In this document: positions 1,322 to 60,400 of the stretch, piece after piece
Position numbering within the stretch: the first letter of the stretch is position 1
How the letters are laid out: the number at the start of each line of letters is the position of its first letter
Assembly: GCF_964204865.1 (NCBI RefSeq)
Contig: NC_135264.1
Span: forward strand, 3,968,001 to 4,032,000
From: Styela clava
Lineage: Eukaryota
Direction of reading: 5' to 3'
Length of the DNA: 64,000 nt
Made by a program: the position numbers and the translations under genes
Notes under the pieces: model-generated
The model's input: only the letters and a program-made list of their open reading frames with translations
Databases searched by the model: none
What the model was told of the DNA's origin: nothing

Positions 1322-4300
1322 GAAATTTCTAAAGGAATAAATAATAGCAAAATCAACAGACCTATAGCATCAGATTTATTAGGAGGTTCAAATCCACCAG
1401 GTTTAATATCTCCTGTCTCTCAGAACAAACAACAACAATCAAATCAATTGATAAACAATTCATCGAGTTCTACAGGTTTTTCAGATGGATTTGCAGATTT
1501 TGATTCTGCCTTTGGTGGATTTTCACCACCGGCTGGTATGTACATTTTTTAATTGGGCATGGTTCACCATATGATTAAGTCGTCTCATCGACCTTCCTCA
1601 CCTTGGAATAAATATGTAAATCTTATCCTTATAATAATTTAAACTGTGGAGTTATGCTGGTCAGTTGCAATGGTCACTGTTTCCAACTTCTAACATTTTT
1701 AAACGATTTGTTGGGTTCCGAATTCTAATATGACTTTTCTTTTGCATAGCTTCATCTGCAAGCACTCAAAATGCTTTTCCGGCATTCAATCAAGTCAATA
1801 CGCAGCCAATTGCATTTACCAACAATGCAACAGGAAATTCTACAAATTTAATGTCAAGTACTGAACCTACGAAAAACAGTTCTGTTGATAAATACGCAGC
1901 ACTTGCTGACTTAGATCTTGTTTTTGGAGCTCAACCGCTCCCACAAGCTACAGAAAAGTAAGAATTTTATTCTACTGTGGGGTAGTTGTATTTGTATGTT
2001 CCATGGACTATTCAATAACTTGATGTTATTCTTATCAATCAATGTAATGAGACTATAGGCTAATTAAAAATCTGCCGAACAAATACAGGCCAGCCAAAAT
2101 TATTTACCGGTAAGTTATATTGTCAAATGTTTATAATTCTGAATCAGAATAGTGTGCTGATAATTTATTAAAAAGATGCAGTTTGACAAAGCTTTAGAAT
2201 TTAGAACAAAATTAGAGAAAACTGGAAATTGTATTTAAAAGTTTCTTTAAAGTTGGCCAAAAAGACCAGCAAAAACATCATAATAAAGTATTACTTTATG
2301 AAAATTTCCAGATGGCAAAAAATAGATAAGTTTTTATAGAAATACCTTCAACACAAACTACTAACTATTAAAATATTTCTAGATGATATCAAGGCTCATG
2401 TTTGATAATTTACTTTATTCATGTATTTATCTATTTAGGTGCTATTTGTTCAATGAAAATTTTGTTCGGCTTTTTTGCCTAATTTCAGTATTTTATATTT
2501 TGCCACCAATGACTAATCTTTGCAGCACTTATCATAATTATCAAGCAAACTCAAATATAAGCCAATGATGTTATGTTTTAGTTAAACTGTTACATTTTTA
2601 TCATATCAGACCTACTGATTTCATGTGGTCATCGCCGGTGAAGCCAGTTCAGCAAACTACTAACAACATAATGATGCAGCAACAACCCACACAACAAAGC
2701 CTTTTTGGTGTGTCAGCTCAACCACAGCAGCAACAAAATAATCTATTTGGTTCATCGCCCATGAGTAATGGTACGTTTATTTTTATGTTGTTGCTAATGT
2801 ATGTTATGCCAACTTTGTGTGAGCTTGAATATCTTGCTTATGAATAGGTTGCCAAGATATTACTCATTACTAAATACATGGTTGGATGATTGGTCAATAT
2901 TATTAATAGATTATGGTTCACTTATTCAAATTGCAATCTTTACTGATTTATACCTGTTATCACAGCACGTAGGATTATAACTCAAATTTTATTTGTGATT
3001 CAGATTCTAAAATTACTTATAATTATTGCTTGAATTTTGTAATTCTGCGCCAATAAATCTGGCTTAATTTAAATGCTTGGTATTTCACTCCTGGTTACTC
3101 CACATGGCTTTGAACCCAGTGAGGAATAATTATGTGCTAGGTATTTGCCCATCGGGGTTCATGTAATCAACTTAACCATTGGCCAGTTTCGGCTTCCTCT
3201 GTCACCATCTACATGCCAGTCTGGAATAACTGGTGGGGTACTCACTAAGTATGTGAACCAAGATGGTGGACACCAGATCGTAGTATGTGTACCAGGTTAG
3301 GGTTAGGTCAGACTCATAATTTTATTCCTATTTTTCTTATTTTAGTTCTATTACGAGTTCGGGGACTAGCCAACCACTCCCATAGTATTTGTATCTGAAA
3401 TTACGGCCTAACCCTAATCTGGTACACATACTACATTCCGGTGTCCGCCATCTTGGCTCACATTCTTCGGGAGTAATACTCGTGGAACATAGAATCGTAA
3501 TCGGGCAAAAGGTTGTGGTTCGCCGTATAATTAAATTGTCCCATCAATTTTTTTTCCGGGACGCTGGGCTAAATATGAAAACCCCACTTTATCAAATTTT
3601 AATTTTACCCAAAAATTAACTGTGAAGAAAATTTTACAGTTCTTCGAATTTGTTAACAATTTTCAGTGAACGCACAACCAACATCACAATCTTCATGGAT
3701 GACGACGCCTGCGGCTCCTGCTGCAGTTCCAGCTCAGACTTTCCCATCATCTTCAGCTAGCAATAATTGGAATCCATGGAACGCGTCATTTCAACAGCAA
3801 CCGCAGCAACAAGCTTCTGCCCCAGTTACAAGTAATCCATTTTTTAATCCAACTCCAGTGACAAATTCCCAAGTTGCGTCATCTGGGAATGAATATGGGG
3901 GATGGATACAACCGCAAACTCAAATGCAGAATATGACAGCAAATACAGCAGGCATGTCATCAACAAATCCTTTTGCAGTAAGTATAGTATTTATAATATA
4001 TTTTATAATCTTTCTCTATTTTGTTTCTTTTCCCCACAAATCTTCTTCAAAAGGTAACTATGCTTATTTTACCATCTGTAAAGCGTTTCTGACCCTAAAA
4101 CACTCCAAGCTCCAAGTGAAAAAGTCTTTAGAATATTCGAACTTTTTGTTGAAATTTTTTTGTTAGCTTCATGCTCCTTTAGTTTCTGTCTAAAGTTTTG
4201 ACTTGTACCAGACTTTATAGCAGAGCACAAGAATTTTAAACATACAGAAGTTTATTTATGTATGATTATTTATTGATTTTCACCTATCTTTATTCTTTAC

Positions 4301-39432: not shown

Positions 39433-40909
39433 GATAAAAAAATTAACTGCGGGACTATTTTGAGAGTTCAGTCATATGTTATGGCAGATTGTTGCTGTCA
39501 TTCAAGCAAACGAAATCCGTCTTTATCCTGTATAACATCCGTCTTTATACCACTATAATATTATGTTTACGCAGTCCTATTTTGTATTGTAGGAGTACTT
39601 TTTTACAGTTTTTATTCATTCAACCTGCTGAAAATAAAATAGTAAGTATCTGAAACATAAGACTTTTACTGAATTGCATTCCGGTGCAAAAATGATAATT
39701 GGGTATTCTGGCAATTCTGACAAAAAAAAAACATACACTAATGTTTTATCACAAACATTAACTTGTTATTTCGTACTCATGCAAAACAAAAGCAACCATT
39801 TCGGATTGAAATTTTTGTTCTGTTTATTTAAAACAGAGCAATTTAATACAGTTCATTTCATCAATATGGCTTTAAATTCACTCAATAATCAAATTTGAAT
39901 TTTGCAGTATCAATTTACATAATCGTATGACGTCAATGGGTATATGTGGAGAACTCATTTAAGTCATCGCTGTCATACGTTGACCGTCTTCTTCATCTAG
40001 TTTCTTGTCACTAACCATATAAATAATGATATCATGTTATAGCGGGTTTATGCAACCGAATTCATATGAAATTTCGTCATATGTTAATATGATATATACA
40101 ACTTTTTTGAAGTTAGGCAAAAAATATCACTAACAAACATACCAACAGTAATCCTATAAAACATGTACATCAATATTGTTAGCTTCGTCGATATAACTAG
40201 GTGAGGCGGAAGAATTTTAGGGCACATGTTGGAAGATGCCTCTCTAGCACCAATTGAAGGTTATTTCAAAATTGGCCATAGTCTTTAGGGGCAAGATATC
40301 GATCATGCTATACATGAAATATGTTTGTTCAAAATGTTACGAATACAAATCTCAAATATATAGACAAATAGTATTCCCGAACACATTTTCTAACAGCGCT
40401 AAGATATATAGCATTTTGCATGTAACATGTCAATAAATATATATATATATATCCAATTGAGAGAACGATACCATTTTACAGCTAATTTGCATATACACAT
40501 TACTAAAAGTAATTAACTTCAGAAAAAATTGGTATATAGTGATATAACAATGAATTCTATGATGTTCAAATTGTAACATCTATGTAGTTACCACCCATAA
40601 ATAAATGTAATGATAACAATAACTTTACAATGAATATGTTGTACATAAGCTATTCTTGAAAAATCTCCTCAGGTGCGGTACAAAAAGTAAATTGCACCCA
40701 ATATTGTCTGCCAGTAACAATATGAAATTCAATACTCCTTTCTGGTAAGAAATGAGCACCCTGCATAAATTAAAGTACCAAAATACGTGCTTAAAACGTC
40801 TCCCCAAATCGCTATTTTGTCTGGTATTAATTTTTAGGGTACATGTATATATTGTGATATTTCCCTCGTCATTTTCGTAGTGCGAGGTCGTCATACAGTA
40901 AGCTGCTGT

Positions 40910-41428
40910 TCATTTCTTAGTTTTTCTGAACCATGAACTCGATCGTTTGGAACTGGTACTTTTTGTGAGAGCTAATTCATCATCGATAGTTGCATAGATT
41001 GGTTCTTTTTTAATCCTTTGTTCTTCTAATTTTCCCCAAGTTTCGGTGCCGGTAGTACACATTTTTACATAACTTCCAGTATGATTCATACTGATATTGG
41101 AACTTGTAGTTTTTGAAATTGGATTCATGAAGTGTTCAATCATTAGATTATTACATTCAGTCGATTTTGTGATAATATCTTCCTTTCTGATTTCAGTTTT
41201 TATATAGTCGGTTGACAATCTATTTAAATCGATTGTTCTGAATAACAGAGGTAGTGCTTCCGATCTTGTAGCCTTGAAGTCATTGTAATTTACCCAGATT
41301 CGAATCGCCTCCCATTTTATTTCTTCTGATGGAAATACAGAATCATGTGTTTTAATGTAAATTAGTATGTCTTTTTCAGAAAAAATTTTGAAACCTTCAG
41401 TGTTGAAAAATCGAACGAAGTCTGCCAT
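40910..41428 (-). CDS. BACK-domain-only protein A1 with Tyr-motif tail (YVKM, EPIYATIDD), 172 aa
   Basis: Uninterrupted ORF. The BACK pattern is visible: EGFKIFS...VFPSEEIKWEAIRIWVNY...LPLLFRTIDLNRLS...ECNNLM. No BTB domain or Kelch repeats in the ORF. Confidence 0.75.
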   Translation of the reverse strand: MADFVRFFNTEGFKIFSEKDILIYIKTHDSVFPSEEIKWEAIRIWVNYNDFKATRSEALPLLFRTIDLNRLSTDYIKTEIRKEDIITKSTECNNLMIEHFMNPISKTTSSNISMNHTGSYVKMCTTGTETWGKLEEQRIKKEPIYATIDDELALTKSTSSKRSSSWFRKTKK

Positions 41429-42175
41429 AGGATTAGTTATATCTTTATCTGTTCAATAATATTAAATGACTAAATAAAAATAAATCAAGTTATTGAATTT
41501 TTTTAATTGAAATTCAAAATTCAAGGTCAAGGGAACTTTCTTCGCAAATACATAGAACTTATTGTCCGTTCATGCAAACTTTCGCATAATTAATCAATTG
41601 TTGATTCTAACGATTTTACAATTTGTAATAAATATAAATCAGAATTTTAACAAATTCAAATTTGACAAATAAAATATTTTAAATTAATCATCGAGAACTG
41701 CTGAACAGATTCATATGCATTATTTAGCACGATTGTAAATTTTGTCGAATATTGGCAAATACTCCAGCGTAATTGTTAAATGCTTGATTATATACTATAT
41801 ATTGGAACATACACTGAGATGTTGCCCTAAAAAAATGGCGTAATCGATGTTGCAAAACCAAGTAAAATAACTCCGTTTATAATATATTCATTCAGATCAA
41901 TCTTTATTATATACAATGAACGTTTTGGAGGAGACATTTTGTAACTGGAAAGAAATCTTTTTTCCATCAGAATTTGATATATTATTGAATAACAAGACAA
42001 ATTATTAGGCAATTGTTTCATAAATCATTCTCTAACATTCGAATTATTACTTGATTAAATAAATTTATGTTTTTTTTATCGAGGTGTCCCAGCAATAAAT
42101 ATGTCATTAAAACATTTTTTGAAATTCGATCATTCAAACAAATGCAACCAATAGAGTTAAATTTTATAAAAATGT

Positions 42176-42628
42176 TTAATTCTTGTCCTTGTTGCGTAGG
42201 CTTGTACGCGCTTCAATTTTAGGGTGACCATTCACGCCGTCGATATCCTCATAAATCCGATCATTACTTTTGCCGTCTTTTGATTTCGCCATTGTATTAG
42301 ATGGAGACATTGGCACATACTGTGAATCCATAACGTGATCAAGTAGCAAATTTGAACATTCAACTGATGTTTTAACCATTATGTCAGATCTGATAGTAAT
42401 TAGGGATTCTCTTGATAATTGACTCAAGTCAATCATTTTGAATAGCGTTGGCAATGTTTCTGACTTATTACTTTTTTGACTTTCGTGGTTGATCCATATT
42501 TGAATGGCCTTCCATCTGATTTCTTCTGATGGAAATACAGCATCGTGTGTTTGAAAATATACCTGGATGTCTTTCTCTGATAAGTTTTTATAACCTTCAG
42601 TATCGAAAAAGTCATTCAAATTCGCCAT
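42176..42628 (-). CDS. BACK-domain-only protein B1 with Tyr-motif tail (YVPM, IYEDID), 150 aa from the ATG
   Basis: Paralog of A1, roughly half identical over the first ~100 aa. Its ATG at 42628 aligns with the A1 start (MANLNDFF / MADFVRFF). The ORF-track start at 42634 is a TTG. Confidence 0.75.
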   Translation of the reverse strand: MANLNDFFDTEGYKNLSEKDIQVYFQTHDAVFPSEEIRWKAIQIWINHESQKSNKSETLPTLFKMIDLSQLSRESLITIRSDIMVKTSVECSNLLLDHVMDSQYVPMSPSNTMAKSKDGKSNDRIYEDIDGVNGHPKIEARTSLRNKDKN

Positions 42629-43002
42629 GATCAAAAAGTTATGAAGCTTTATTTCTGAAGGGAGAAAACTAAACGCAAATTGAAAGACAAATTTTTTTTT
42701 TATAGCAGTTTAGTAGAAGTAGCAATCATGCATGACATTATCAATAAATAGTGTGTGTGGTCATGGGTTGAAATTAAACATGAATTAGCATCACAAATAC
42801 TGAATTTATAAAGTGTTTACATTCAATCATGATTAGTTTACGTTATTTAAATTAGACGCAGTTTAAATCCATGATAGTTCAATTACATACAAAGCTTCCT
42901 TATTTGAAGAATTATGCTTCGTAATAAGCCCTGGCAAATCTTTGAGAGCACTTTTAAGAGCAATCTTAGAAACAATACGAACGAATTTTCAAACATAAAT
43001 TG

Positions 43003-43164
43003 ATTGACTTGGCAATATTTGTACATCACCTTAATGGCTGTACTTGTATATTGATTTGGATATATATACATATGACTTGGCAGTATATGTATATTTGGTT
43101 GACTGTATATGTACCGGTATATGAGTTGGCGGTATATGCATATTCTTGGCAGTATAAGTATGGC
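43003..43164. repeat. Degenerate ~22-bp minisatellite (second copy at ~52764-52925)
   Basis: Recurring tatgacttggcagtatatgta-like units. Confidence 0.55.
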
Positions 43165-43694
43165 TAGGGTTACCATATTTATGCTCCATATATTACCACT
43201 TCAGAGTGCGACGTCTGTAAAGACAACGACCCTTTAGCTGTGATTTTGTAACTTTACATTTTCTGATTTTAATATATAGGCCTATATTCAAAGCTACCCC
43301 GGCTGTCTTCATTGACCATATTGTCATCGAGAATTCATGCGCATATACGCTGTCCAAATCTCGGGTTCAGTTCGAAAAATAGAAATGAATTGACGTTAAC
43401 GATACAGGTACAAATAATTCGTATTTAGACTAGTTAGTATTGGTTTTACATGCAATACGTTTTCCAACAATGTTAGCGGGAAACAAGGAAACCAACGCCT
43501 TCACCTTCAGTAAGTAGGCTAGCGCTGCGCTACAAAGAAACAACAGTAACAAAAACATGTTCGTGTTCTGTATTATGCTGGATAGCTGAACGCCAAAGCG
43601 GGACGGCGGGACAAGACGCTGAAAAGCGGGACGGCGGGACAAGACGCTGAAAAGCGGGACTGTCCCGCCTAAAGCGGGACGTATGATAAACTTA
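43165..43694. mobile_element. hAT-type MITE (duplicate at 52926-53427)
   Basis: Left TIR tagggttaccata, decayed right TIR tatgataaactta, a 7/8-matching TSD agtatggc/tgtatggc, and subterminal gcgggac repeats. Confidence 0.65.
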
Positions 43695-44911
43695 TGTATG
43701 GCACGTTACCAATCCTATCGCCTGTGCTTAGTTTGTGAAAACAAATGACGAAACATCAACCAATTTGCTAATTGACCAATAGGAAAGAATTCGCCTTTGC
43801 AATAATTTTATTGCGCATTCATTTTATGCACAATCTTCATTATTTATATTCTAGTATTACATGTTTCGGATAAATTTATACTTTCCACCGTTTCGTCTAA
43901 ATGTACTTTTAACTACGACATCATATGCCATTCTTGGTATACTGTTGTTTACGTTTGGACATCTTTCTTCTAACTTGATGACAATACGCATTTAAATATT
44001 ACAATACAAATATAGTTATCTAGAATTTGGAAACATTTTATTTCTTGCAAAATCTCACTTTGTTAACTTTGACTTTGTTATTCTTGAACATTATAAGACC
44101 TTTTCATCAAGCACAAGTTTCCGCAATGTTACTGGCTGCTCTTCAACTAAAATTGATTACAACTCTTCAGTAATTATACAGCTGATTGCTCAACTGGTTT
44201 ATTTGTTAAGTCGCGAATATTTTCTTATCAATTGTTGACTTTTATCCGGATTTACTTTTGGGCAAATATCTATCGTATATGTATCGCGCTATCGATGAAG
44301 ATGTTTGACAATATCAAACTGTTTCTTTTTTGTAATGAATATCATCCCCATGCGTTAATAATTACACTTAATGTCTAATTACACTACGCGTTGCAATATG
44401 CTATATGCCAGTGAAGGATTACAAAGTGTCTCCATTAATGTTGAGCTCTGAAACTCGACTACCAGCTGACTGTGTAAAAACACGATTTGCTTGTTATGTG
44501 CCTGAAAGATACATGCGTATCGAGACCCTCTATTAGAGAGCGGTATTAATGTTATAGATATATACTGGCAGTTATAAACAATACAAAATATGCAACTCGA
44601 TGACTATCAAAACTTCAGCATCTAAAACAGCGCGGCATCATGTACGAGCACTGCGTAAAAAGGTCATATGTGATGTCATACAACATAGGTTGTAAGCACA
44701 ATTAAACAATATGCTTCATATGGAAGTTTCCCTGAGCATCGACTTTCTTCTTTGCCTCAGTAACAATTGCTAATCAGCAAGATGCAAAAAGTGAGGGAAC
44801 AATAAACGTTTCAGCAGCCAGAAACTTCTGTTACTTAGGCAGAATTTTAAATGTGGTTTTAAATATTACCTCGTTTTCGTGTTTTTGCGTTAGTTTTTTT
44901 AATCTTATGAA

Positions 44912-47900
44912 TAGGGATGTAAGTTTCGAATATTTTTTTTTTCGAATCGAATACCGAATATTTTTTTTTCGAATCGAATATTTCCGAATCGATTCTGATT
45001 AATACAACATCACTTTTTCTTTGACTTTATTCAACACACACAAGGTTATTTTTCAGTAAACACGCATATTAATACATGCACGCATAATAATGTTCAATTG
45101 AGGTGAACAATAAACTAGCAATCATTCACTGCTGCATCAAACTTCGGTTGCAGTGCAAGAAGTTTAACTCATTTACGTGTGTACCACTGAGTCTGGTTCT
45201 TAATCTGGAAACTGTCAAACCAGCAGAAGAGAAGGCTCTCTCCGCTGGTGCTGACGTACACGGTATAGCCAAGTACCGATTGGCCATTTTGTGTAGGGAT
45301 GGAGAATCAGTTTTTCGGGCATGCCACCACAATAATGGGTTTAACCGCTCTGTATTTCTGTCCAATTTCTCTTTCAAGTACTGTGAAATTTCCTCCGACA
45401 CTTTAGATGCATATCCTTCCGATTCAGACGAGCTTGACTGTTCAATCCCTATCGAAAAGAGTCCTTGGAGAGAATTTTGTTCCACCTCTGGAGCAGTAAC
45501 CGCAGAAGGTTCAACGTGTATTTCATCTTGTATTTCTGGCATTGAAGCTTCAGTGGCTTCCATTTCTAGAGAAACTCTGACCTTGAAACACAAAAAATAT
45601 TATATGGGTTTGTACAAGTCTATAAATGATATGAAAGGGATAATGTTAGTTGAACCACTTGTATAACTCACACAATGAACAACAGAATCCAGAATACTAC
45701 CAACACATGTAAAAGAAAAAATCACAGTTGCAAATTAGGAACATCACAGCCTATGCGTTTGAAAGAGTAATTTTGACCTGACTTCACAAATTTAAGAAAT
45801 ACAATGGTATACCAGATTTTAAGTGAATATTACCTGGACTCTGAAAGAACGATCAAAAAATTTCCCTTTATGACAAGGATGGAGCCATGTTGCTTTTTGG
45901 AACAAGTTGACCTCTTCTTGACTGGGTGTTTCCAGTATAGAACGAAATCGAAGTTTGAGAGAATTTATGAGAGTGTTGCAAAATTCATTCGTAATAGCTG
46001 ATAGTGTCCCACCCTCATTTCTCTTTTCCTCACAATGGCCCAACAGCCCTTTTGTGAGAGGAATCAAAGAGGAAACTGTTACATAGTCACCTTCAAGATG
46101 GTCAGAGGCAGCCTGTCAAAATATGAAACAAATAATTTTATTGCATACATATATGTGCTAACAAATATCAAGAGATATGCAAAGTAATTTACACTACCTT
46201 GAAGGGTTCTAAAATCTCTGCTAGCACTGTAAGCATATTCCATGTTGTTTCACCTAATTCCAGGTGACTTGCTGCTGTTCTAGGAGTAATTGTTGGGTCA
46301 CATAATACAGATCGAATAGTCCATTGATGAGAGATCAAATTTTTTATCATAACATAAGTGGAATTCCATCTTGTAGATACGTCGATTGGCATTTCTATTG
46401 AAGGAGATGTGCCATCCTGAGCATGTCGATGTCTTAAAGTTGTCATAGCTTTCGTTGATCGGCGAAAGTACTGCACCAAATGACGAGCTCCAGCTGCAAA
46501 AACGAAGAAATTATTGCACTTAACAATACAAATGCTTACAATGAAATAATAACCTATGCAGATTAAAAAATATGCATTTTTTCTCTCATAAATTAGGTTT
46601 TTACAAAGACAAGTAATTTTAGTTAATAAACCTTTTCAACATAAATTAAAATCACCTAATGCATGAGATATTTCTTCAATTTTTAAGCCATCTTTGATGC
46701 AGAGCTGAATCGTATGTGCAGCGCATCTAATATGGTACCAACCATATTCTTCGTAAAGTGAACGACAAGCTGACACCACATTTGCTCCATTATCTGTTGT
46801 CACTGAGAGCACCTTTGTCGGGCTGATATCAAACTCACTCAATGATTTTAAAATTTCTGATTTTATATTTTCTGCCGTTTGAGCCTCATCCATCTGTTCT
46901 GTTGTCAATACATACTTGAGTAATTGACCATCGCTCGGATCTACGAAATGGGCAGTGACAGTTATATATGCTTGCATTCTTGCACTGGTCCACATGTCTG
47001 TTGTAAGTGAGACAGATTTTTCTTTTATGGCCCCTAGTATGTTAATAAGCTTTTCTTTACATTCTTTATACCTCCTTTCAATATGTTTAGTTACAGTGTT
47101 ACGCCCGGGTAATACATAGCCTGGCTGTAAGTGATGTATCAGTGAACGAAAATGCTGTCCCTCAACAAGGTTTATTGGCCGGAGGTCTCCAACAATAACT
47201 TCAGTTATCAATCTATCTATTGTCTCACACTGACCCTTAGTTATTGGCTTTAAATAGGCAGTCAAGCTGCTTTGCTGAACTGAAGAAGTTCTGGAATTAA
47301 AAGAACAACAGGTTAACCTCATCTCAAGACTGCAAGAGGACTTGTTGAATAAAGTCCACTATCCAGACTATCTGACTACAGGACTATGTTTCACCAAAAA
47401 CTACAGACAGGCAGAACTACTGACAGACTGAACTAACAGAAATTCATAGCATGTAGCGGCTTAAGCGGACGAAAATTAGAAAACAAAAAGATAAATATAC
47501 GGGTGTACAGGATAAATATGTTAATCCTATCCTAAGCTATTGACTTACCCAGCATGAACAATGTTTCGGGGAGCAAAGGTGTCCTCACATGTAGGCCTAT
47601 CCTTCACGTCCTTAGGCCGGATATGGCTTGAAATGCCAGTTGAGGCGGTCACAAACGTATGCTTCCTCCGTAAATGGTTTAGCAAGTTTCCGGTAGTGTT
47701 TTGATACACAAATTTTTCCTTGCAAACAGAGCACAAGGTGTAAAATGTGCCATTTTCCTCCAGCGGCGTACAGAAATAATTCCACACAACAGACGTCGGC
47801 CGCCTACCCTGTTTTCTGATACCGGGTTTCGACTTCTTATTGATGTTTTGCATCTATCAGTTTATGAAATACACGTTTGAAACATACGATGGCATTACAA

Positions 47901-48210
47901 ATGCACGAAGCGACTAAAATAAACGTGCGGAGCTCGCTCGCAGCCACAATAAACATGTCTAAACCAGTCACTTTGGTCTAAACTTGTCCCGGCGACATAG
48001 ATAAATAGTCGATAAGGCGCAATTTTAACAATTAATCGATTTTATTCGCTGGCCAACGTGACGTTAGTCTTACGACGCGGAGAATGCATTGTTTCAATTG
48101 ATTTTTTTTTAATCAGAATCACGGCTCTTTTTTGAAAATTGCTTCGAATCGATTCGAATCAGATTTGATTCGAATCGATTCGATTCGAAATTCTGAAACT
48201 TACATCCCTA
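44912..48210 (-). mobile_element. Full-length autonomous hAT (Ac/ZBED1-like) DNA transposon, 3299 bp
   Basis: Perfect 16-bp TIRs tagggatgtaagtttc / gaaacttacatcccta, a perfect 8-bp TSD cttatgaa (44904-44911 and 48211-48218), subterminal tcgaat/attcga arrays, and an empty site in the paralogous copy. Confidence 0.97.
45126..47853 (-). CDS. hAT transposase with BED zinc finger, ~656 aa, 5 exons
   Basis: Exons 47853-47549, 47290-46656, 46493-46198, 46112-45834 and 45581-45126 (the last acceptor is AAG and less certain) splice to one open frame. BED finger VWNYF...CSVC...HLRRKH; catalytic TTDMWT, TTDNGAN, CAAH, RWNST and SAPAERAFS; C-terminal dimerisation domain PLLWW. Confidence 0.9.
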
Positions 48211-48899
48211 CTTATGAATCATAATGATGGTTTAAAACATAAAAATAGTTGATAGGCTCTAACTCGCGAAACCGCTCTTAATATAAACACCAAAAATTTT
48301 GAAATGATATATTATGGGAAGAATTTTCCTGGGGTCAAAGGTCGGAGAAACATCCATTGACGGATACGTTACGGCTACGCGGTTGTCCTAGCTCCATAGG
48401 TCTGTGACGATGGCGATTCTTTCATATACACCCAGTCTAAAGGTGAATCAAAATACCAGTACTGTTAAAGCTATTTGAATGTTGGAATCTTACAAATTAT
48501 CCCCAATTTGATTAAAATCATGGATACAAGTTTATTTTCCAATTTTCTAAGAATGAGTTTCATAAGTAACACATTACACAATTCAAGTGTGCGGAAATAT
48601 GTTATTGTTTCAGCGATTATCAACTCATTTGAGATATTCTACGTCGTTAAAAAACTCCCGAATTCGCAAAGCATAAAATCGCGAGTGCGATCGTAGAACA
48701 GCCACACGATGCACAGTTTTTAATTTTGATGACGTCAGCACACAAATCTTTAAAGTAAAAAACGAACCCACAGAAGTAATGGACTTATAGTGACAATAAC
48801 ACCCTTCAACTACCAAACAATTGAAAGCAATTGGCGATTTATTCGAGGTTCATTAATAAAGACTATCTGCGAGGCAGACTTCAATTTGTTGAAGTTGAC

Positions 48900-49720
48900 A
48901 CTAATCGTTCCCAATTTTTTCGAATCGAAACTGGAGTAATTCAAGGATCCTGCCCTGGTCCATTATTATTCATATTTCATTTATAAACGACATCTACATT
49001 CCTCTGATTTTATGAAAAAATTATTTGCTGATGGTGACACTGGTCTTCTCAGCAGTTCCAAATCTTCAACGGACCTCCAAAACATGTTAGTCTAGAAATA
49101 AAAATCGCAACTACAACAAAACACCCCTGAAAATCAAAATCAATGGAATGAAGATTGAGGTGTATCTTCATATAAATATCTAGGATTAAACATAGATTGT
49201 CGTTTAAAGTGGGGAGTACACATCAATGAAACGCTCAGTAGGCATTTCGAGCAAACTTTAACATTACTCAGAAAGAAACACTCTGAGATAGTCTATTATT
49301 TTTACTTTAAAGCCTATGTCCAATATGTAGTTGTTGCTTGGGGATCGGCCTCCAAGTAGAAACATAATCCCTTATAGGCCTACTGCTCATGTTAACATGA
49401 ATATCATGTACTGCATAACTGGTCTCCTCAAATATACCGATATTTATCAGCTGGGAATTTGTAAATTGATGCAACAATTCCCTAATAACTATTTCGCCAA
49501 GCAAATCAGTGTTCACGATTATAACACCAGATCAGCATCACTATCATCATTCCACGTACCCCGTCAGACTTAATCTAATACTCAAAATTCATTTAAATAT
49601 AATAGTGTTACCATGTGGAAACTTGTCGGCTTACTTCGAATGTTTGTAACAACTTGACTGGGAATGATTTCTGTTGGCACCGCATGGCGAAAACGAATGA
49701 AAAAACCATCTTAATGAGTA
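48900..49720 (+). pseudogene. Degenerate non-LTR retrotransposon (CR1/L2-like) reverse-transcriptase 3' fragment
   Basis: Frameshifted motifs TGVIQGSCPGPLLF, IND, KLFADGDT, YKYLGLNIDCRLKWGVHI, VAWGSAS and HDYNTRS. Confidence 0.75.
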
Positions 49721-49974
49721 CTGACCTAGTAAATATTTTATAATTGCGATAATCGATTATTACATTACAAATTTGGGCCACTAACTTTCTCATTTTCATA
49801 TTACTTGTCTCCTTATATATACTCGTATATACAAGCCAACCCAACGATGTGATGTTAATGCAATTATGGACGTACCCAATAGATAACGAACAGGCGTAAA
49901 CAGGGTTCGTCTGATTCAGTATATTTTTTATTCTTAATTTCACTCGAATCTCAAACATGTGCAATATAGTCCTT

Positions 49975-50285
49975 TTCTCAGTGCTACCGTTACCTTCTAT
50001 TTTACTTTTTGAACTCCTTCCGCCTCATATGTTCATTTTCCAGACTCATTTCACCCAATTTTCTTATTTCCTGCCCTCATTCATTGCATTTAAATTTATT
50101 TCACAGACTCATTCTACCATCTGCATTCAAATTCCAGGTTTCTTCCAACTCGTATGTATATTTACTTTACAGACTCCGTTCATCGTATGTATTTTTTACT
50201 AGACTGCTCCCGCCTCATTAGTTTATTTTTGACTCTTCCCACCTCTGATATTTACTTTGCAAACTAATTCAACCACAGATATTTA
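49975..50285. repeat. Degenerate ~33-bp minisatellite, truncated at the duplication junction
   Basis: Units resembling tttactttccagactccttccacctcata. Confidence 0.65.
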
Positions 50286-50670
50286 TAAATTGGTATATAG
50301 TGATATAACAATGAATTCTATGATGTTCAAATTGTAACATCTATGTAGTTACCACCCATAAATAAATGTAATGATAACAATAACTTTACAATGATTATGT
50401 TGTACATAAGCTATTCTTGAAAAATCTCCTCAGGTGCGGTACAAAAAGTAAATTGCACCCAATATTGTCTGCCAGTAACAATATGAAATTCAATACTCCT
50501 TTCTGGTAAGAAATGAGCACCCTGCATAAATTAAAGTACCAAAATACGTGCTTAAAACGTCTCCCCAAATCGCTATTTTGTCTGGTATTAATTTTTAGGG
50601 TACATGTATATATTGTGATATTTCCCTCGTCATTTTCGTAGTGCGAGGTCGTCATACAGTAAGCTGCTGT

Positions 50671-51189
50671 TCATTTCTTAGTTTTTCTGAACCATGAACT
50701 CGATCGTTTGGAACTGGTACTTTTTGTGAAAGCTAATTCATCATCGATAGTTGCATAGATTGGTTCTTTTTTAATCCTTTGTTCTTCTAATTTTCCCCAA
50801 GTTTCGGTGCCGGTAGTACACATTTTTACATAACTTCCAGTATGATTCATACTGATATTGGAACTTGTAGTTTTTGAAATTGGATTCATGAAGTGTTCAA
50901 TCATTAGATTATTACATTCAGTCGATTTTGTGATAATATCTTCCTTTCTGATTTCAGTTTTTATATAGTCGGTTGACAATCTATTTAAATCGATTGTTCT
51001 GAATAACAGAGGTAGTGCTTCCGATCTTGTAGCCTTGAAGTCATTGTAATTTACCCAGATTCGAATCGCCTCCCATTTTATTTCTTCTGATGGAAATACA
51101 GAATCATGTGTTTTAATGTAAATTAGTATGTCTTTTTCAGAAAAAATTTTGAAACCTTCAGTGTTGAAAAATCGAACGAAGTCTGCCAT
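50671..51189 (-). CDS. BACK-domain-only protein A2, 172 aa
   Basis: Identical to A1 except L to F in ELALT/ELAFT, just after EPIYATIDD. Confidence 0.75.
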   Translation of the reverse strand: MADFVRFFNTEGFKIFSEKDILIYIKTHDSVFPSEEIKWEAIRIWVNYNDFKATRSEALPLLFRTIDLNRLSTDYIKTEIRKEDIITKSTECNNLMIEHFMNPISKTTSSNISMNHTGSYVKMCTTGTETWGKLEEQRIKKEPIYATIDDELAFTKSTSSKRSSSWFRKTKK

Positions 51190-51936
51190 AGGATTAGTTA
51201 TATCTTTATCTGTTCAATAATATTAAATGACTAAATAAAAATAAATCAAGTTATTGAATTTTTTTAATTGAAATTCAAAATTCAAGGTCAAGGGAACTTT
51301 CTTCGCAAATACATAGAACTTATTGTCCGTTCATGCAAACTTTCGCATAATTAATCAATTGTTGATTCTAACGATTTTACAATTTGTAATAAATATAAAT
51401 CAGAATTTTAACAAATTCAAATTTGACAAATAAAATATTTTAAATTAATCATCGAGAACTGCTGAACAGATTCATATGCATTATTTAGCACGATTGTAAA
51501 TTTTGTCGAATATTGGCAAATACTCCAGCGTAATTGTTAAATGCTTGATTATATACTATATATTGGAACATACACTGAGATGTTGCCCTAAAAAAATGGC
51601 GTAATCGATGTTGCAAAACCAAGTAAAATAACTCCGTTTATAATATATTCATTCAGATCAATCTTTATTATATACAATGAACGTTTTGGAGGAGACATTT
51701 TGTAACTGGAAAGAAATCTTTTTTCCATCAGAATTTGATATATTATTGAATAACAAGACAAATTATTAGGCAATTGTTTCATAAATCATTCTCTAACATT
51801 CGAATTATTACTTGATTAAATAAATTTATGTTTTTTTTATCGAGGTGTCCCAGCAATAAATATGTCATTAAAACATTTTTTGAAATTCGATCATTCAAAC
51901 AAATGCAACCAATAGAGTTAAATTTTATAAAAATGT

Positions 51937-52389
51937 TTAATTCTTGTCCTTGTTGCGTAGGCTTGTACGCGCTTCAATTTTAGGGTGACCATTCACGCCG
52001 TCGATATCCTCATAAATCCGATCATTACTTTTGCCGTCTTTTGATTTCGCCATTGTATTAGATGGAGACATTGGCACATACTGTGAATCCATAACGTGAT
52101 CAAGTAGCAAATTTGAACATTCAACTGATGTTTTAACCATTATGTCAGATCTGATAGTAATTAGGGATTCTCTTGATAATTGACTCAAGTCAATCATTTT
52201 GAATAGCGTTGGCAATGTTTCTGACTTATTACTTTTTTGACTTTCGTGGTTGATCCATATTTGAATGGCCTTCCATCTGATTTCTTCTGATGGAAATACA
52301 GCATCGTGTGTTTGAAAATATACCTGGATGTCTTTCTCTGATAAGTTTTTATAACCTTCAGTATCGAAAAAGTCATTCAAATTCGCCAT
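51937..52389 (-). CDS. BACK-domain-only protein B2, 150 aa
   Basis: Protein identical to B1. Confidence 0.75.
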   Translation of the reverse strand: MANLNDFFDTEGYKNLSEKDIQVYFQTHDAVFPSEEIRWKAIQIWINHESQKSNKSETLPTLFKMIDLSQLSRESLITIRSDIMVKTSVECSNLLLDHVMDSQYVPMSPSNTMAKSKDGKSNDRIYEDIDGVNGHPKIEARTSLRNKDKN

Positions 52390-52925
52390 GATCAAAAAGT
52401 TATGAAGCTTTATTTCTGAAGGGAGAAAACTAAACGCAAATTGAAAGACAAATTTTTTTTTTATAGCAGTTTAGTAGAAGTAGCAATCATGCATGACATT
52501 ATCAATAAATAGTGTGTGTGGTCATGGGTTGAAATTAAACATGAATTAGCATCACAAATACTGAATTTATAAAGTGTTTACATTCAATCATGATTAGTTT
52601 ACGTTATTTAAATTAGACGCAGTTTAAATCCATGATAGTTCAATTACATACAAAGCTTCCTTATTTGAAGAATTATGCTTCGTAATAAGCCCTGGCAAAT
52701 CTTTGAGAGCACTTTTAAGAGCAATCTTAGAAACAATACGAACGAATTTTCAAACATAAATTGATTGACTTGGCAATATTTGTACATCACCTTAATGGCT
52801 GTACTTGTATATTGATTTGGATATATATACATATGACTTGGCAGTATATGTATATTTGGTTGGCTGTATATGTACCGGTATATGAGTTGGCGGTATATGC
52901 ATATTCTTGGCAGTATAAGTATGGC

Positions 52926-53427
52926 TAGGGTTACCATATTTATGCTCCATATATTACCACTTCAGAGTGCGACGTCTGTAAAGACAACGACCCTTTAGCT
53001 GTGATTTTGTAACTTTACATTTTCTGATTTTAATATATAGGCCTATATTCAAAGCTACCCCGGCTGTCTTCATTGACCATATTGTCATCGAGAATTCATG
53101 CGCATATACGCTGTCCAAATCTCGGGTTCAGTTCGAAAAATAGAAATGAATTGACGTTAACGATACAGGTACAAATAATTCGTATTTAGACTAGTTAGTA
53201 TTGGTTTTACATGCAATACGTTTTCCAACAATGTTAGCGGGAAACAAGGAAACCAACGCCTTCACCTTCAGTAAGTAGGCTAGCGCTGCGCTACAAAGAA
53301 TCAACAGTAACAAAAACATGTTCGTGTTCTGTATTATGCTGGATAGCTGAACGCCAAAGCGAGACGGCGGGACAAGACGCTGAAAAGCGGGACTGTCCCG
53401 CCTAAAGCGGGACGTATGATAAACTTA
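52926..53427. mobile_element. hAT-type MITE, duplicate of 43165-43694
   Basis: Same sequence as copy 1, with one fewer 28-bp aagcgggacggcgggacaagacgctgaa-type unit. Confidence 0.65.
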
Positions 53428-55325
53428 TGTATGGCACGTTACCAATCCTATCGCCTGTGCTTAGTTTGTGAAAACAAATGACGAAACATCAACCAATTTG
53501 CTAATTGACCAATAGGAAAGAATTCGCCTTTGCAATAATTTTATTGCGCATTCATTTTATGCACAATCTTCATTATTTATATTCCAGTATTACATGTTTC
53601 GGATAAATTTATACTTTCCACCGTTTCGTCTAAATGTACTTTTAACTACGACATCATATGCCATTCTTGGTATACTGTTGTTTACGTTTGGACATCTTTC
53701 TTCTAACTTGATGACAATACGCATTTAAATATTACAATACAAATATAGTTATCTAGAATTTGGAAACATTTTATTTCTTGCAAAATCTCACTTTGTTAAC
53801 TTTGACTTTGTTATTCTTGAACATTATAAGACCTTTTCATCAAGCACAAGTTTCCGCAATGTTACTGGCTGCTCTTCAACTAAAATTGATTACAACTCTT
53901 CAGTAATTATACAGCTGATTGCTCAACTGGTTTATTTGTTAAGTCGCGAATATTTTCTTATCAATTGTTGACTTTTATCCGGATTTACTTTTGGGCAAAT
54001 ATCTATCGTATATGTATCGCGCTATCGATGAAGATGTTTGACAATATCAAACTGTTTCTTTTTTGTAATGAATATCATCCCCATGCGTTAATAATTACAC
54101 TTAATGTCTAATTACACTACGCGTTGCAATATGCTATATGCCAGTGAAGGATTACAAAGTGTCTCCATTAATGTTGAGCTCTGAAACTCGACTACCAGCT
54201 GACTGTGTAAAAACACGATTTGCTTGTTATGTGCCTGAAAGATACATGCGTATCGAGACCCTCTATTAGAGAGCGGTATTAATGTTATAGATATATACTG
54301 GCAGTTATAAACAATACAAAATATGCAACTCGATGACTATCAAAACTTCAGCATCTAAAACAGCGCGGCATCATGTACGAGCACTGCGTAAAAAGGTCAT
54401 ATGTGATGTCATACAACATAGGTTGTAAGCACAATTAAACAATATGCTTCATATGGAAGTTTCCCTGAGCATCGACTTTCTTCTTTGCCTCAGTAACAAT
54501 TGCTAATCAGCTAGATGCAAAAAGTGAGGGAACAATAAACGTTTCAGCAGCCAGAAACTTCTGTTACTTAGGCAGAATTTTAAATGTGGTTTTAAATATT
54601 ACCTCGTTTTCGTGTTTTTGCGTTAGTTTTTTTAATCTTATGAATCATAATGATGGTTTAAAACATAAAAATAGTTGATAGGCTCTAACTCGCGAAACCG
54701 CTCTTAATATAAACACCAAAAATTTTGAAATGATATATTATGGGAAGAATTTTCCTGGGGTCAAAGGTCGGAGAAACATCCATTGACGGATACGTTACGG
54801 CTACGCGGTTGTCCTAGCTCCATAGGTCTGTGACGATGGCGATTCTTTCATATACACCCAGTCTAAAGGTGAATCAAAATACCAGTACTGTTAAAGCTAT
54901 TTGAATGTTGGAATCTTACAAATTATCCCCAATTTGATTAAAATCATGGATACAAGTTTATTTTCCAATTTTCTAAGAATGAGTTTCATAAGTAACACAT
55001 TACACAATTCAAGTGTGCGGAAATATGTTATTGTTTCAGCGATTATCAACTCATTTGAGATATTCTACGTCGTTAAAAAACTCCCGAATTCGCAAAGCAT
55101 AAAATCGCGAGTGCGATCGTAGAACAGCCACACGATGCACAGTTTTTAATTTTGATGACGTCAGCACACAAATCTTTAAAGTAAAAAACGAACCCACAGA
55201 AGTAATGGACTTATAGTGACAATAACACCCTTCAACTACCAAACAATTGAAAGCAATTGGCGATTTATTCGAGGTTCATTAATAAAGACTATCTGCGAGG
55301 CAGACTTCAATTTGTTGAAGTTGAC

Positions 55326-56146
55326 ACTAATCGTTCCCAATTTTTTCGAATCGAAACTGGAGTAATTCAAGGATCCTGCCCTGGTCCATTATTATTCATA
55401 TTTCATTTATAAACGACATCTACATTCCTCTGATTTTATGAAAAAATTATTTGCTGATGGTGACACTGGTCTTCTCAGCAGTTCCAAATCTTCAACGGAC
55501 CTCCAAAACATGTTAGTCTAGAAATAAAAATCGCAACTACAACAAAACACCCCTGAAAATCAAAATCAATGGAATGAAGATTGAGGTGTATCTTCATATA
55601 AATATCTAGGATTAAACATAGATTGTCGTTTAAAGTGGGGAGTACACATCAATGAAACGCTCAGTAGGCATTTCGAGCAAACTTTAACATTACTCAGAAA
55701 GAAACACTCTGAGATAGTCTATTATTTTTACTTTAAAGCCTATGTCCAATATGTAGTTGTTGCTTGGGGATCGGCCTCCAAGTAGAAACATAATCCCTTA
55801 TAGGCCTACTGCTCATGTTAACATGAATATCATGTACTGCATAACTGGTCTCCTCAAATATACCGATATTTATCAGCTGGGAATTTGTAAATTGATGCAA
55901 CAATTCCCTAATAACTATTTCGCCAAGCAAATCAGTGTTCACGATTATAACACCAGATCAGCATCACTATCATCATTCCACGTACCCCGTCAGACTTAAT
56001 ATAAGACTCAAAATTCATTTAAATATAATAGTGTTACCATGTGGAAATTTGTCGGCTTACTTCGAATGTTTGTAACAACTTGACTGGGAATGATTTCTGT
56101 TGGCACCGCATGGCGAAAACGAATGAAAAAACCATCTTAATGAGTA
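55326..56146 (+). pseudogene. Duplicate of the degenerate LINE RT fragment
   Basis: Same sequence as 48900-49720 at offset 6426. Confidence 0.75.
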
Positions 56147-56399
56147 CTGACCTAGTAAATATTTTATAATTGCGATAATCGATTATTACATTACAAATTT
56201 GGGCCACTAACTTTCTCATTTTCATATTACTTGTCTCCTTATATATACTCGTATATACAAGCCAACCCAACGATGTGATGTTAATGCAATTATGGACGTA
56301 CCCAATAGATAACGAACAGGCGTAAACAGGGTTCGTCTGATTCAGTATATTTTTTATTCTTAATTTCACTCGAATCTCAAACATGTGCAATATAGTCCT

Positions 56400-56985
56400 T
56401 TTCTCAGTGCTACCGTTACCTTCTATTTTACTTTTTGAACTCCTTCCGCCTCATATGTTCATTTTCCAGACTCATTTCACCCAATTTTCTTATTTCCTGC
56501 CCTCATTCATTGCATTTGAATTTATTTCACAGACTCATTCTACCATCTGCATTCAAATTCCAGGTTTCTTCCAACTCGTATGTATATTTACTTTACAGAC
56601 TCCGTTCATCGTATGTATTTTTTACTAGACTGCTCCCGCCTCATTAGTTTATTTTTGACTCTTCCCACCTCTGATATTTACTTTGCAAACTAATTCAACC
56701 ACAGATATTTACTTTTCAGACTCTTTCCACTACACGTTCTTAGTTTTTCGACTCCTTCCACCTAGTGGGTTTACTTTCCCGACTTCTTCATCCTAATGTA
56801 TTGATTTTCCAGATGACATTAAACTCATAGTTTTCCAGACTCAATTTTACAGACTCGTTATCTCATACATTTACTCTGCAGACTCCTTCTATCTGATTTT
56901 TTTCAAAAATATTCACTTCACTGACTTTGTACCTCGTATTATATCTTTACAGAAACCTTACATCTCATATATTTACTTATCAGTG
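56400..56985. repeat. Degenerate ~33-bp minisatellite, full-length array
   Basis: tttact(t/c)..cagactc units continue ~270 bp beyond the end of the duplicated segment (56711). Confidence 0.65.
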
Positions 56986-57464: not shown

Positions 57465-60400
57465 TTATTCTAAAGCTGTTATCAAATTCTCCTCGTAAAT
57501 TGAAAGTACCAGAAGAATAGCCCAGCCAAGTAATAAGCCCAGATTTTGTAATCCGAATTGTAGAAAAGGTTTTGAAGTTTTTGACTCCACCATCTCATGA
57601 AGCTGTGAAATAGAAGAATTAAATAAATATAATATCCATGTGCAGACAATAAAACAATATGAAGTACATGATAAGTAAAAAGTTCTCTAGATTTGACACT
57701 AAATATTTTCTGAACCAAAATATATCTTACAACATCAACAAGGGAAATGTATAGGAACATTCCGGCGATCACCGCCATAATCCAGTTCCTGACTTCCGAA
57801 TTTTCAGCGATTGCAAGTCCAATGTACAAACCAACGAAAGCCATACACGCGGCCGCAAAATTTGCCAGGAGTGCTTTCCATTTTGATAATCCGTTGTTCA
57901 TATAAATTGCAAAATCGCCTTGGAAAAATAACATGGTAAATAATATTGAAATCCGATGACATATTGTTAGAGATATTGTATATTAGAGATATTGTCATCA
58001 AAATTATGTTGAGTGAAAATGTTTCCAGGTCAATATTTTAAAGCTTACGACCAGACAAAATTTAAACTTTTTTAAACTCAAATATTACTTGAAGCTGAAA
58101 ATTGTTACAAAGTTTAGGTTGAACCAATATTATAACATTTGACTATATTTAGAAAATTACGATAAATGAATCTTGAGTAAGAACTAACCAAACTCATGCG
58201 GTAACTCGTGACAGAATATTGCTATAGATGTCCCAACACCAGAAACCCATCCACTGCTAAACGCAACTCCGATTGCAAGTCCATCTCCGAAGTTGTGTAA
58301 AACATCTCCAATAAGAACCATCGCTGCCACGACTGTCAAATCTGAAACAAAGACGAGAAAAATTCAGAATATAAACAGAGACGAAACTAACACATAAAAA
58401 CATGCTTCATATATATATATTGTTTTCTGATTGAAATTTAGGTAACTCATATCCTTCCCACAAATTGATAAAAAGTGCTATTCTATTTATTCATGCATTT
58501 GACGCATGATTGTTTTACGAACTGATGTATGCCAAAAAAAGTTAGGTCAACAGCAAGGAAAATAAAACGATCAGCACCTCCAATTACTTTCTGAGAAGCA
58601 TGTTCTTCCATTTCTTCCTTCTGAATATTGATAATACAATGTATTAGTTCAAGAATGAAAAGCGCCGCAAAATTATCTATTTGTAATAATCAGTTTATGA
58701 TATTTTTCTACTTGATGTTACATTGCCAACAACAGTTTGTCACTTCCAGAATTTTAAGACTGCCAAATTTCAAAATCAACAATTTTCGTATCACGCACTC
58801 ACGTTATTTGACACAATGCGGACATGCGAAATGTTTTGCTATATTGTTGCTGTTTATGTTGCTATTGTGATAAAAAAAAATACTTTTTAACCATTACTCA
58901 TATAATTTCAGTGGGATTATCGCAAGTCTTTCTGTTAGTCAGGGGTTGGCAACCTACGGCCCGTGGGCCAGATCCGGTCCGCGGAGTACAATAATCCGCC
59001 CGCGACGCTTCACTGAATTATAGAGACAAAACGGCGGTTTCACGAGGAAATAATTTTATAATCCAACCTCGAGGAGTCAAATATTGGACACGTAGTGAAC
59101 ATAGCGATCGTTTCAATATTTTGTTGTTGTTGTTCTTGTTGTTCTTTGACACTTTTTGGACAACTACTGGAAAATCTTAAAAGTCGAAATTTTCCGTGCT
59201 TGAAGATAAAAAATTTCTTTAGAAGGCTATTACTTTCATTTACTTCAAACGTGTCTATTTATTTGAGTATAGCTCTCTTGTAATATCAAGTAACAGAATT
59301 TATTGTGACTTGTGTAGATTAAATTGTAATTTTAAGTAACAGAATTTATTGTGACTTGTGTAGATTAAATTATACTAGGACCTATCAAGCTATTCAACAG
59401 CTACTCGTTTAACGAGCCTACGATTTAATTATAATTAGGCAAATGGCAACACGCAGAAAAGTTGAAGTTGAGTACAGAGAGTTCAATGGCGCAAAAATAT
59501 TCGAATAGAGCTTTTTGAGATGCAATGCAATGAGAAAATAAAATCCATATTTTACTCGAGAGATGTATCAATGCTTGCTTTTTATAAAAAGTATCTTCTT
59601 GAAGTTGTTATAATGTTGGCTTCATTCAGTGTGTCGCCTGATTTCGAAAAGCTGTCAAGCGGGATGCAACAACAAGTGTCACATTAAATATCATTTGTGA
59701 AACTTTTTCTTTTAGTAGGACGAGTTGAATTCACGAGCTGTCGCAGTCTTTGCCCGCTGTTACTTCTGATATGTGTAAAAAAATTGTGTTTCGTCGTCCA
59801 TCTATTCGGTTTTAACTTTCTAAAAATATGTGCGGCCCGCCAAGACTTGCAACTCTTAATTTTGGCCCGCGAGGGATAAAATGTAGCCGACCCCTGCTCT
59901 AGGTGATGATTTTGATATTTTCATATCTTTCGAGGCTTCCGGCAAACTATTGTTTCCCTCCAAATTTTGCGTTGCGAAAATTTCTGGTGGAAAAAAATTT
60001 GTTGGTACCAGTAACATACTGTACAACTATTTGCGCTTGGTTTGTTGTTAAGAAGTAATTTGTCAAATAATCTCCCACAAAAACTTGATATAGATAGCTG
60101 AACTATACCTTTTCATCTTGGGGAAGACTGTCAACATCTTGTGGAGATACGCTCTCTGTTGCAAAACTAGTGACTGATTGAGTTACCGGTATTCCATTTT
60201 CATTTTCTGTTGTGTTATCGTGATCATTTGATGTAAAATCATTTATATGTACAGTGATCTTATTCTGAAATTGAATAAAAGTCGATTGAAAGATTTTCCA
60301 TAAATAGGAATTGAATACAGGTAGTTAGAAGATCACTAAAGATTATTCATTACTTTATGGTTTCATCAGTTTAGATATAGCTAGATGTATTTACGCATGA

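Follow-up and report, generated by a model that had tools for sequence, protein, structure and literature searches.

How could a fragment of a Cul3-adaptor domain come to stand as a gene of its own, and what do the tyrosine motifs that follow it mean? The question is raised by a 64-kb window of the 377-Mb genome of the tunicate Styela clava (C19:3968001-4032000), the whole stretch of DNA that was analysed, whose first letter is position 1 in the coordinates below. On its minus strand the window holds two short open reading frames (ORFs), here called A and B, in two copies each, and both encode a BACK-like domain with a tail behind it. We conclude, with a probability of about 0.6, that A and B are a tandem pair of small, old and lineage-specific genes of S. 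clava that derive from a 5'-truncated copy of an intronless BTB-BACK-BACK gene, one that ended in a Kelch propeller or in a tail. According to this model, each gene encodes the C-terminal three-quarters of the second BACK domain (about 105 helical residues) with a disordered tail, 45-66 residues long, behind it. A and B share the truncation and the start codon, and their coding core has been under purifying selection since the two genes split. The four ORFs result from a very recent tandem duplication of 6.4 kb, one copy of which later received a transposon of the hAT family.

Open reading frames and their truncated BACK domain

ORF A extends from 40910 to 41428 in its first copy (172 codons plus the stop; a truncated BACK-like domain and then the tail) and from 50671 to 51189 in its second copy, and the two copies differ by one codon (L154F). 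ORF B, with 150 codons from its first ATG plus the stop, extends from 42176 to 42628 and, with the same sequence, from 51937 to 52389, and only 748 bp separate it from A, which follows downstream in the same orientation. All four ORFs lie where the initial annotation had placed them, and the motif coordinates given there are correct. What it called a four-gene cluster, however, is a set of two genes within the recent duplication, and four genes appear because the duplicated 6.4-kb unit holds both A and B. The two ORFs begin with Met-Ala at an equivalent homologous position, and in A an in-frame stop lies 8 codons 5' of the ATG. No stop interrupts the reading frames of A and B, whereas 6-16 stops fall in the two remaining frames of this DNA, indicating that these reading frames are not chance frames. 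The intact frame of A and B is also held in all four copies and in a variant haplotype.

The Pfam BACK profile (PF07707) matches A with 23.0 bits and B with 25.9 bits, which are weak scores just above the cut-off of 20.9 bits. The matches cover profile positions 27-100 in A and 23-100 in B out of 103, neither of them being full-length, and extending the ORFs upstream to the nearest stop does not lengthen them. A search of the PDB with a profile made from the alignment of A, B and 14 paralogue segments finds KLHL3 residues 178-274 (E 4e-20), KLHL11 169-267, KEAP1 217-310 and gigaxonin 161-253, and these ranges are the portion of BACK past the 3-box. AlphaFold2 predicts an all-helical structure for residues 1-106, with a predicted local distance difference test score (pLDDT) of 84-95, followed by a disordered tail, and the best Foldseek matches are BTB-BACK chains of KLHL11 (probability 1.00, root-mean-square deviation 2.5-3.1 Å, 101-107 columns). 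The helical BACK-like domain of A (residues 1-106), as given by Pfam, the PDB profile search, AlphaFold2 and Foldseek, corresponds to 41111-41428, and the tail of 66 residues, predicted to be disordered (pLDDT mostly below 50-60) and ending in a basic C-terminus, corresponds to 40913-41110. The BACK domain that had been proposed for these ORFs is supported by Pfam and structure prediction, and the tail, which had been described as low-complexity, is predicted to be disordered. The results also show that the BACK domain of A and B is not whole but N-terminally truncated, comprising about the C-terminal three-quarters. The description of the proteins as BACK-domain-only is therefore right in that no BTB precedes the domain and no Kelch follows it (no Kelch domain is found with Pfam, and the ORFs end 45-66 disordered residues past the domain), but it overlooks that the BACK domain itself is incomplete at its N-terminus.

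By sequence profile and by fold, the helical part of A and B is a homologue of the last ~100 BACK residues in the KLHL/KBTBD Cul3 adaptors, such as KLHL3, KLHL11, KEAP1 and gigaxonin. Unlike these adaptors with their BTB-BACK-Kelch layout, A and B lack the BTB, the 3-box, the first BACK helices (profile positions 1-22 or 1-26) and the Kelch propeller, and they are proteins of only 150-172 residues with a disordered tail at the end. The 3-box and the N-terminal BACK helices contact Cul3 in KLHL/KBTBD adaptors, and the start of the alignment at KLHL3 residue 178 and KLHL11 residue 169 indicates that A and B do not contain them. Because they have neither a BTB domain nor a 3-box, A and B are presumably unable to recruit Cul3 as substrate adaptors by themselves, and they would most likely be small soluble partner or regulator proteins.

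The nearest relatives of A and B in any database searched belong to the BTB-BACK-BACK expansion of S. clava itself. The genome contains at least 448 BTB candidates, the majority of them in single long ORFs, and the bulk of the family is intronless and has the order BTB-BACK-BACK, ending in a Kelch propeller or in a tail, which may be acidic. Such two-BACK layouts appear to be the norm in the BTB expansion of this genome. Members of the expansion include a 400-residue ORF at C5:6033462-6034661, a cluster of 441-residue ORFs on C5, with whose tails the tail of B aligns loosely, and the protein XP_077966279.1, which has a BTB domain and at least four BACK domains. A and B align with the second BACK domain of their relatives, beginning about 27 residues into it, whereas the paralogues cover PF07707 positions 1-102. 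Compared with the members of the expansion, A and B lack everything before about residue 286, and they have a Met start and tyrosine motifs of their own. They are found at one locus only and are 51% identical to each other across ~103 residues, while their best identity to anything else in the genome is 36%, with a range of 24-36% among the closest relatives. A HMMER scan of 1.84 billion representative proteins gives only 31 matches, with identities of 21-32% and no orthologue of A or B among them, and a word-indexed protein search with A gives zero matches. These values are in line with the proposal of a lineage-specific, recycled BTB-BACK fragment, since no relative exceeds 36% in the genome and none exceeds 32% among the representative proteins. 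They do not extend to the expanding family that was proposed along with it, as the count stops at two paralogues, to which a single, very young segmental duplication has been added.

Short BACK ORFs elsewhere in the genome were considered as members of the A/B family and rejected, because BTB and first-BACK homology is recognisable upstream of them in other frames and they are, unlike A and B, decayed full-length copies. As several short BACK ORFs prove to be broken full-length copies, the BTB-BACK-BACK family turns over by birth and death. Frameshifted or stop-interrupted BTB-BACK-BACK copies are located on C5 at 5.66, 5.76 and 5.91 Mb, on C19 at 1.45-1.54 Mb, on C4 at 20.03 Mb and on C10 at 5.76 Mb. 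In addition, XP_077966279.1 is an intronless protein of 935 residues in which one BTB domain is followed by four to six tandem BACK domains and no Kelch (C2:23231000-23235500, ORF 1493-4297, minus strand).

Selection on the domain and tyrosine motifs in the tails

Between the domains of A and B, the ratio of non-synonymous to synonymous divergence (dN/dS) is 0.19 by the NG86 method, 0.22 by maximum likelihood and 0.42 by the LWL85 method, with a dS of about 1.7. The identity by codon position is 69% at the first, 74% at the second and 52% at the third position. At the DNA level, the alignment of A and B is limited to the coding core, where 117 nt are 79% identical, and the flanks are unalignable. 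A dN/dS of ~0.2 together with flanks that have diverged beyond alignment identifies A and B as an old constrained pair, duplicated long ago and kept by purifying selection at the protein level, and not as decay fragments.

Each tail contains exactly two tyrosines, spaced 25 residues apart in A and 22 residues apart in B. In the translation of A, the first lies in GSYVKM, a YxxM motif (41060-41077), and the second in EPIYATIDD (40979-41005, and 50740-50766 in the second copy). In B they lie in SQYVPM, again a YxxM motif (42308-42325), and in RIYEDID (42239-42259). The tails had been described as unalignable except for two tyrosine motifs in the same order, and this description agrees with the alignments: generic local and semi-global alignments of the tails are no better than those of shuffled sequences (p 0.58 and 0.26), while the 5 identities found within 4 residues on either side of the paired tyrosines are reached in only 210 of 100,000 shuffles (p≈0.002), in a test devised post hoc. 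The pattern indicates two putative islands of retention, YV[KP]M and IYxxID, inside tails that would otherwise have drifted freely. The expectation that the motifs would recur in other family members is contradicted, since none of the 46 relatives examined carries the tail YxxM or IYxxID motifs; YxxM occurs in the relatives about once per 1000 residues and always within folded domains.

If A and B act as such partner proteins, the two islands would be short linear binding motifs. YxxM is the consensus sequence for the SH2 domains of p85; CTLA-4 carries YVKM, and PDGFR-beta and Gab1 carry YVPM. The same tetrapeptides are present in A and B within a disordered region, but the known sites belong to receptors or large scaffolds, whereas A and B are small BACK fragments with no membrane anchor. 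The YxxM island would suit a p85-type reader, and IYxxI could suit readers of the Src, Csk or SHP2 type. An Atg8/LC3-interacting-type motif, on the other hand, consists of an aromatic residue, two other residues and then I, L or V, with acidic flanks, and on sequence alone IYxxID is as good a candidate for such a motif as for SH2 docking.

EPIYATIDD is the core of the Western CagA EPIYA-C peptide, which is phosphorylated by Src (PMC4011759), and the match in A is exact over nine residues, as had been noticed at the outset. Helicobacter pylori CagA is a bacterial secreted effector whose repeated EPIYA segments undergo phosphorylation inside host cells, whereas A is an animal gene that has one such site and does not otherwise resemble CagA. 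The match had been interpreted as something other than transfer, and this interpretation is upheld, as only 9 residues are shared and B keeps IYxxID alone. B, which reads RIYED here, has 4 of the 9 residues of EPIYATIDD in common (I, Y, I and D), and because it shares only these positions, the identity over all nine residues is most likely a coincidence on top of a conserved IYxxID core. EPIYA-type 5-mers are present in about 1% of all proteins (PMC2999339).

Upstream sequence, read contigs and alternative readings

No BTB domain and no N-terminal part of a BACK domain was found in the window, either by tblastn with 6 paralogues or with a family-specific hidden Markov model of 297 positions run at maximum sensitivity against all six-frame segments. 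The same negative result was obtained beyond the window by tblastn of C19:4032001-4082000, which is the 50 kb upstream, and of C19:3948001-3958000. A weak upstream match (E 0.22) was inspected and judged to be spurious. The nearest same-strand gene upstream of A and B encodes a ZIP (SLC39-type) zinc transporter, an exon of which lies at 57482-57934 on the minus strand (PF02535, 47.8 bits, profile positions 222-299 of 323), and its presence leaves limited room for 5' exons of A or B. The 3' end of the ZIP gene must fall just upstream of the duplicated unit or extend into it.

The reads available for the locus come from five runs (X1-X5) of two studies, which are only guessed to be RNA, and they take the form of assembled contigs without strand or ends. 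A contig of 1490 nt with a depth of ~7 spans 39968-41445, covering A and 0.9 kb downstream and running into the flank unique to copy 1, and a contig of 873 nt with a depth of ~3 spans B. The A contigs of X1 and X2 both stop at 41445. Of the 12 letters past the 5' end of the A contig, 7 match the local genome; the 12 letters carry an in-frame stop and have no upstream match in the window. A spliced leader was considered as their source and rejected, as the 15-mer made of these letters and the next 3 bases occurs once in the genome, which is the level of the control and of chance; in the literature, no spliced leader of S. clava was found. An AATAAA signal is located 268 nt past the stop of B. 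Directly upstream of B lies a high-copy repeat (52800-53600, and also 43040-43840), at which the contig depth is 35-258 in each of the four runs aligned there and which yields many short contig pieces with loose ends on both sides.

Several observations speak against two stand-alone, constrained genes. Acceptor-like sites, with a pyrimidine tract and AG, are present 6-9 codons before both ATGs in equal phase, and the putative exon starts at these sites would be 41448 for A and 42654 for B. Within codons 15-74 of A, the haplotype seen in X1 and X2 departs from the reference at 8 non-synonymous and 4 synonymous sites, suggesting that the constraint is now relaxed or that gene conversion has occurred. 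Neither AATAAA nor ATTAAA is found within 1 kb after the stop of A; low-depth contig patches also lie on non-coding DNA, and the runs merely guessed to be RNA contain no splice joints; A, B and their orthologues are not in the protein collections searched. The shuffle-level alignment of the tails and the post hoc design of the test on the tyrosine islands belong on the same side of the balance.

The variant haplotype has a mosaic structure. It is ~9% divergent at 41208-41457 (50969-51218 in copy 2) and shows 2 differences in ~680 nt over the tail and the 3' flank, with no difference from copy 1 in the tail of A. Such a mosaic could reflect a chimeric contig, a balanced haplotype of old age, or gene conversion in which a paralogue missing from the assembly was the donor.

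Some of these observations would be expected if A and B were the 3'-terminal exons of a larger spliced gene, with an upstream exon completing the BACK domain. Besides the pyrimidine-rich AG sites of equal phase, the Pfam match that begins only at profile position 23-27, the end of the A contigs at 41445 beside the AG site, and the short distance of 748 bp by which B precedes A, in the same orientation, all fit such an arrangement. We nevertheless regard it as quite unlikely. The missing N-terminus does not turn up in the 64-kb window or the 50 kb upstream, even with the family-specific model; the next same-strand gene upstream is the ZIP transporter; and the paralogues are all intronless. No joints are seen, and the contigs continue through the putative acceptor of B, while the 12 letters past the A contig resemble the local genome, carry an in-frame stop and are not a spliced leader. 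Moreover, the Met-Ala start is conserved between A and B, and AG sites with pyrimidine tracts are commonplace in DNA of 30% GC. Other observations from the list would suit remnants of a gene that was duplicated only in part, which would be untranscribed or have no function and in which the tyrosine motifs and EPIYATIDD would have arisen by chance. A and B are absent from the public protein sets, and A has no protein relative of similar length; the only contigs at the locus belong to runs whose RNA origin is a guess, and a canonical poly(A) signal is missing after A. The excess of non-synonymous differences in one haplotype, the shuffle-level alignment of the tails and the frequency of EPIYA-type 5-mers among all proteins point the same way. 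This explanation seems improbable to us in view of the dN/dS of ~0.2 at a dS of ~1.7, of frames that stay open in four copies and in the variant haplotype, where the alternative frames contain 6-16 stops, and of a coding core that is 79% identical over 117 nt while its flanks are unrecognisable; the genuine relics elsewhere in the genome also differ in look.

If A and B are stand-alone genes, a narrower question is whether they are expressed phosphotyrosine adaptors or decoys that connect Src-type kinases to SH2 domains of the p85 type and of the SHP2 or Csk type, as the initial annotation proposed, with a possible role in immunity. Both motifs lie within a tail predicted to be disordered, their order and spacing are kept in tails that are otherwise unalignable, the tail is invariant in a haplotype with 8 residue differences in the domain, and EPIYATIDD coincides with a core that Src phosphorylates in CagA. 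The basis of the proposal is two sequences, however; the motifs are absent from all other relatives, no orthologue is found among the representative proteins, B shares fewer than half of the EPIYATIDD residues, and the LC3-type reading of IYxxID fits equally. We therefore consider this special case very unlikely. Phosphorylation, SH2 binding and an immune role are candidate properties of A and B, suggested by motif resemblance alone. The strongest version, in which A and B are expressed and their tails act as phosphotyrosine switches that place an endogenous chordate site identical to CagA EPIYA-C (for an SHP2/Csk-type reader) beside a PI3K-type YxxM on a recycled Cul3-adaptor scaffold, would be a long shot. 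In that version, the proteins would couple tyrosine-kinase signalling to the very large set of BTB-BACK proteins of the species, perhaps by bridging or as decoys.

Under the preferred reading of two truncated stand-alone genes, A and B, if expressed, would represent a fragment of a Cul3-adaptor scaffold that has been freed of BTB and Kelch and that selection has maintained as a small protein with linear motifs of its own. They would also be an example of how truncating duplication creates new genes within a BTB-BACK expansion that is very large and specific to a tunicate lineage. If the tyrosine islands are functional, the A/B pair would amount to a compact adaptor that lends itself to experiment. 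As things stand, the locus is a tidy evolutionary curiosity; the signalling story is hypothetical, and the identity with CagA is unsupported beyond 9 residues.

Tandem duplication and hAT element

The two A/B pairs belong to the two copies of a tandem duplication that self-blastn detects at 99.2-99.8% identity. Copy 1 (40526-50285) consists of the 6.4-kb unit and a hAT transposon, and copy 2 (50287-56711) consists of the unit with the hAT site empty (54637-54644). Over ~6.4 kb, 11 mismatches (0.17% substitutions) and 2 indels separate the copies, and a single filler T at 50286 forms their junction, with no gap or N. The transposon is 3299 bp long (44912-48210), is bounded by terminal inverted repeats of 16 bp and is flanked by a target-site duplication of 8 bp (CTTATGAA). 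Its several ORFs, on the minus strand, encode a BED zinc finger, DUF659 and hAT dimerisation domains. The results show that the 6.4-kb duplication is very recent and that the hAT element entered one copy afterwards.

An assembly artefact would offer another account of the second A/B pair: a haplotype that carries the hAT element and another that lacks it would have been placed in tandem, and the animal would have one A and one B. The copies do differ chiefly by the filled and the empty hAT site and by the few substitutions, and the X1 contig over A continues into the flank unique to copy 1, with no contig crossing 50286. Against this account, the junction is sharp, being made of one filler base with neither a gap nor an N, and the divergence of 0.17% between the copies is far below the ~2% found between the reference and another haplotype. 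Because haplotypes of this heterozygous species diverge so much more than the copies do, a young true duplication fits better than two alleles, and we consider the artefact unlikely.

The hAT element looks complete; its 16-bp terminal repeats are perfect, and the sister copy preserves the corresponding empty site.

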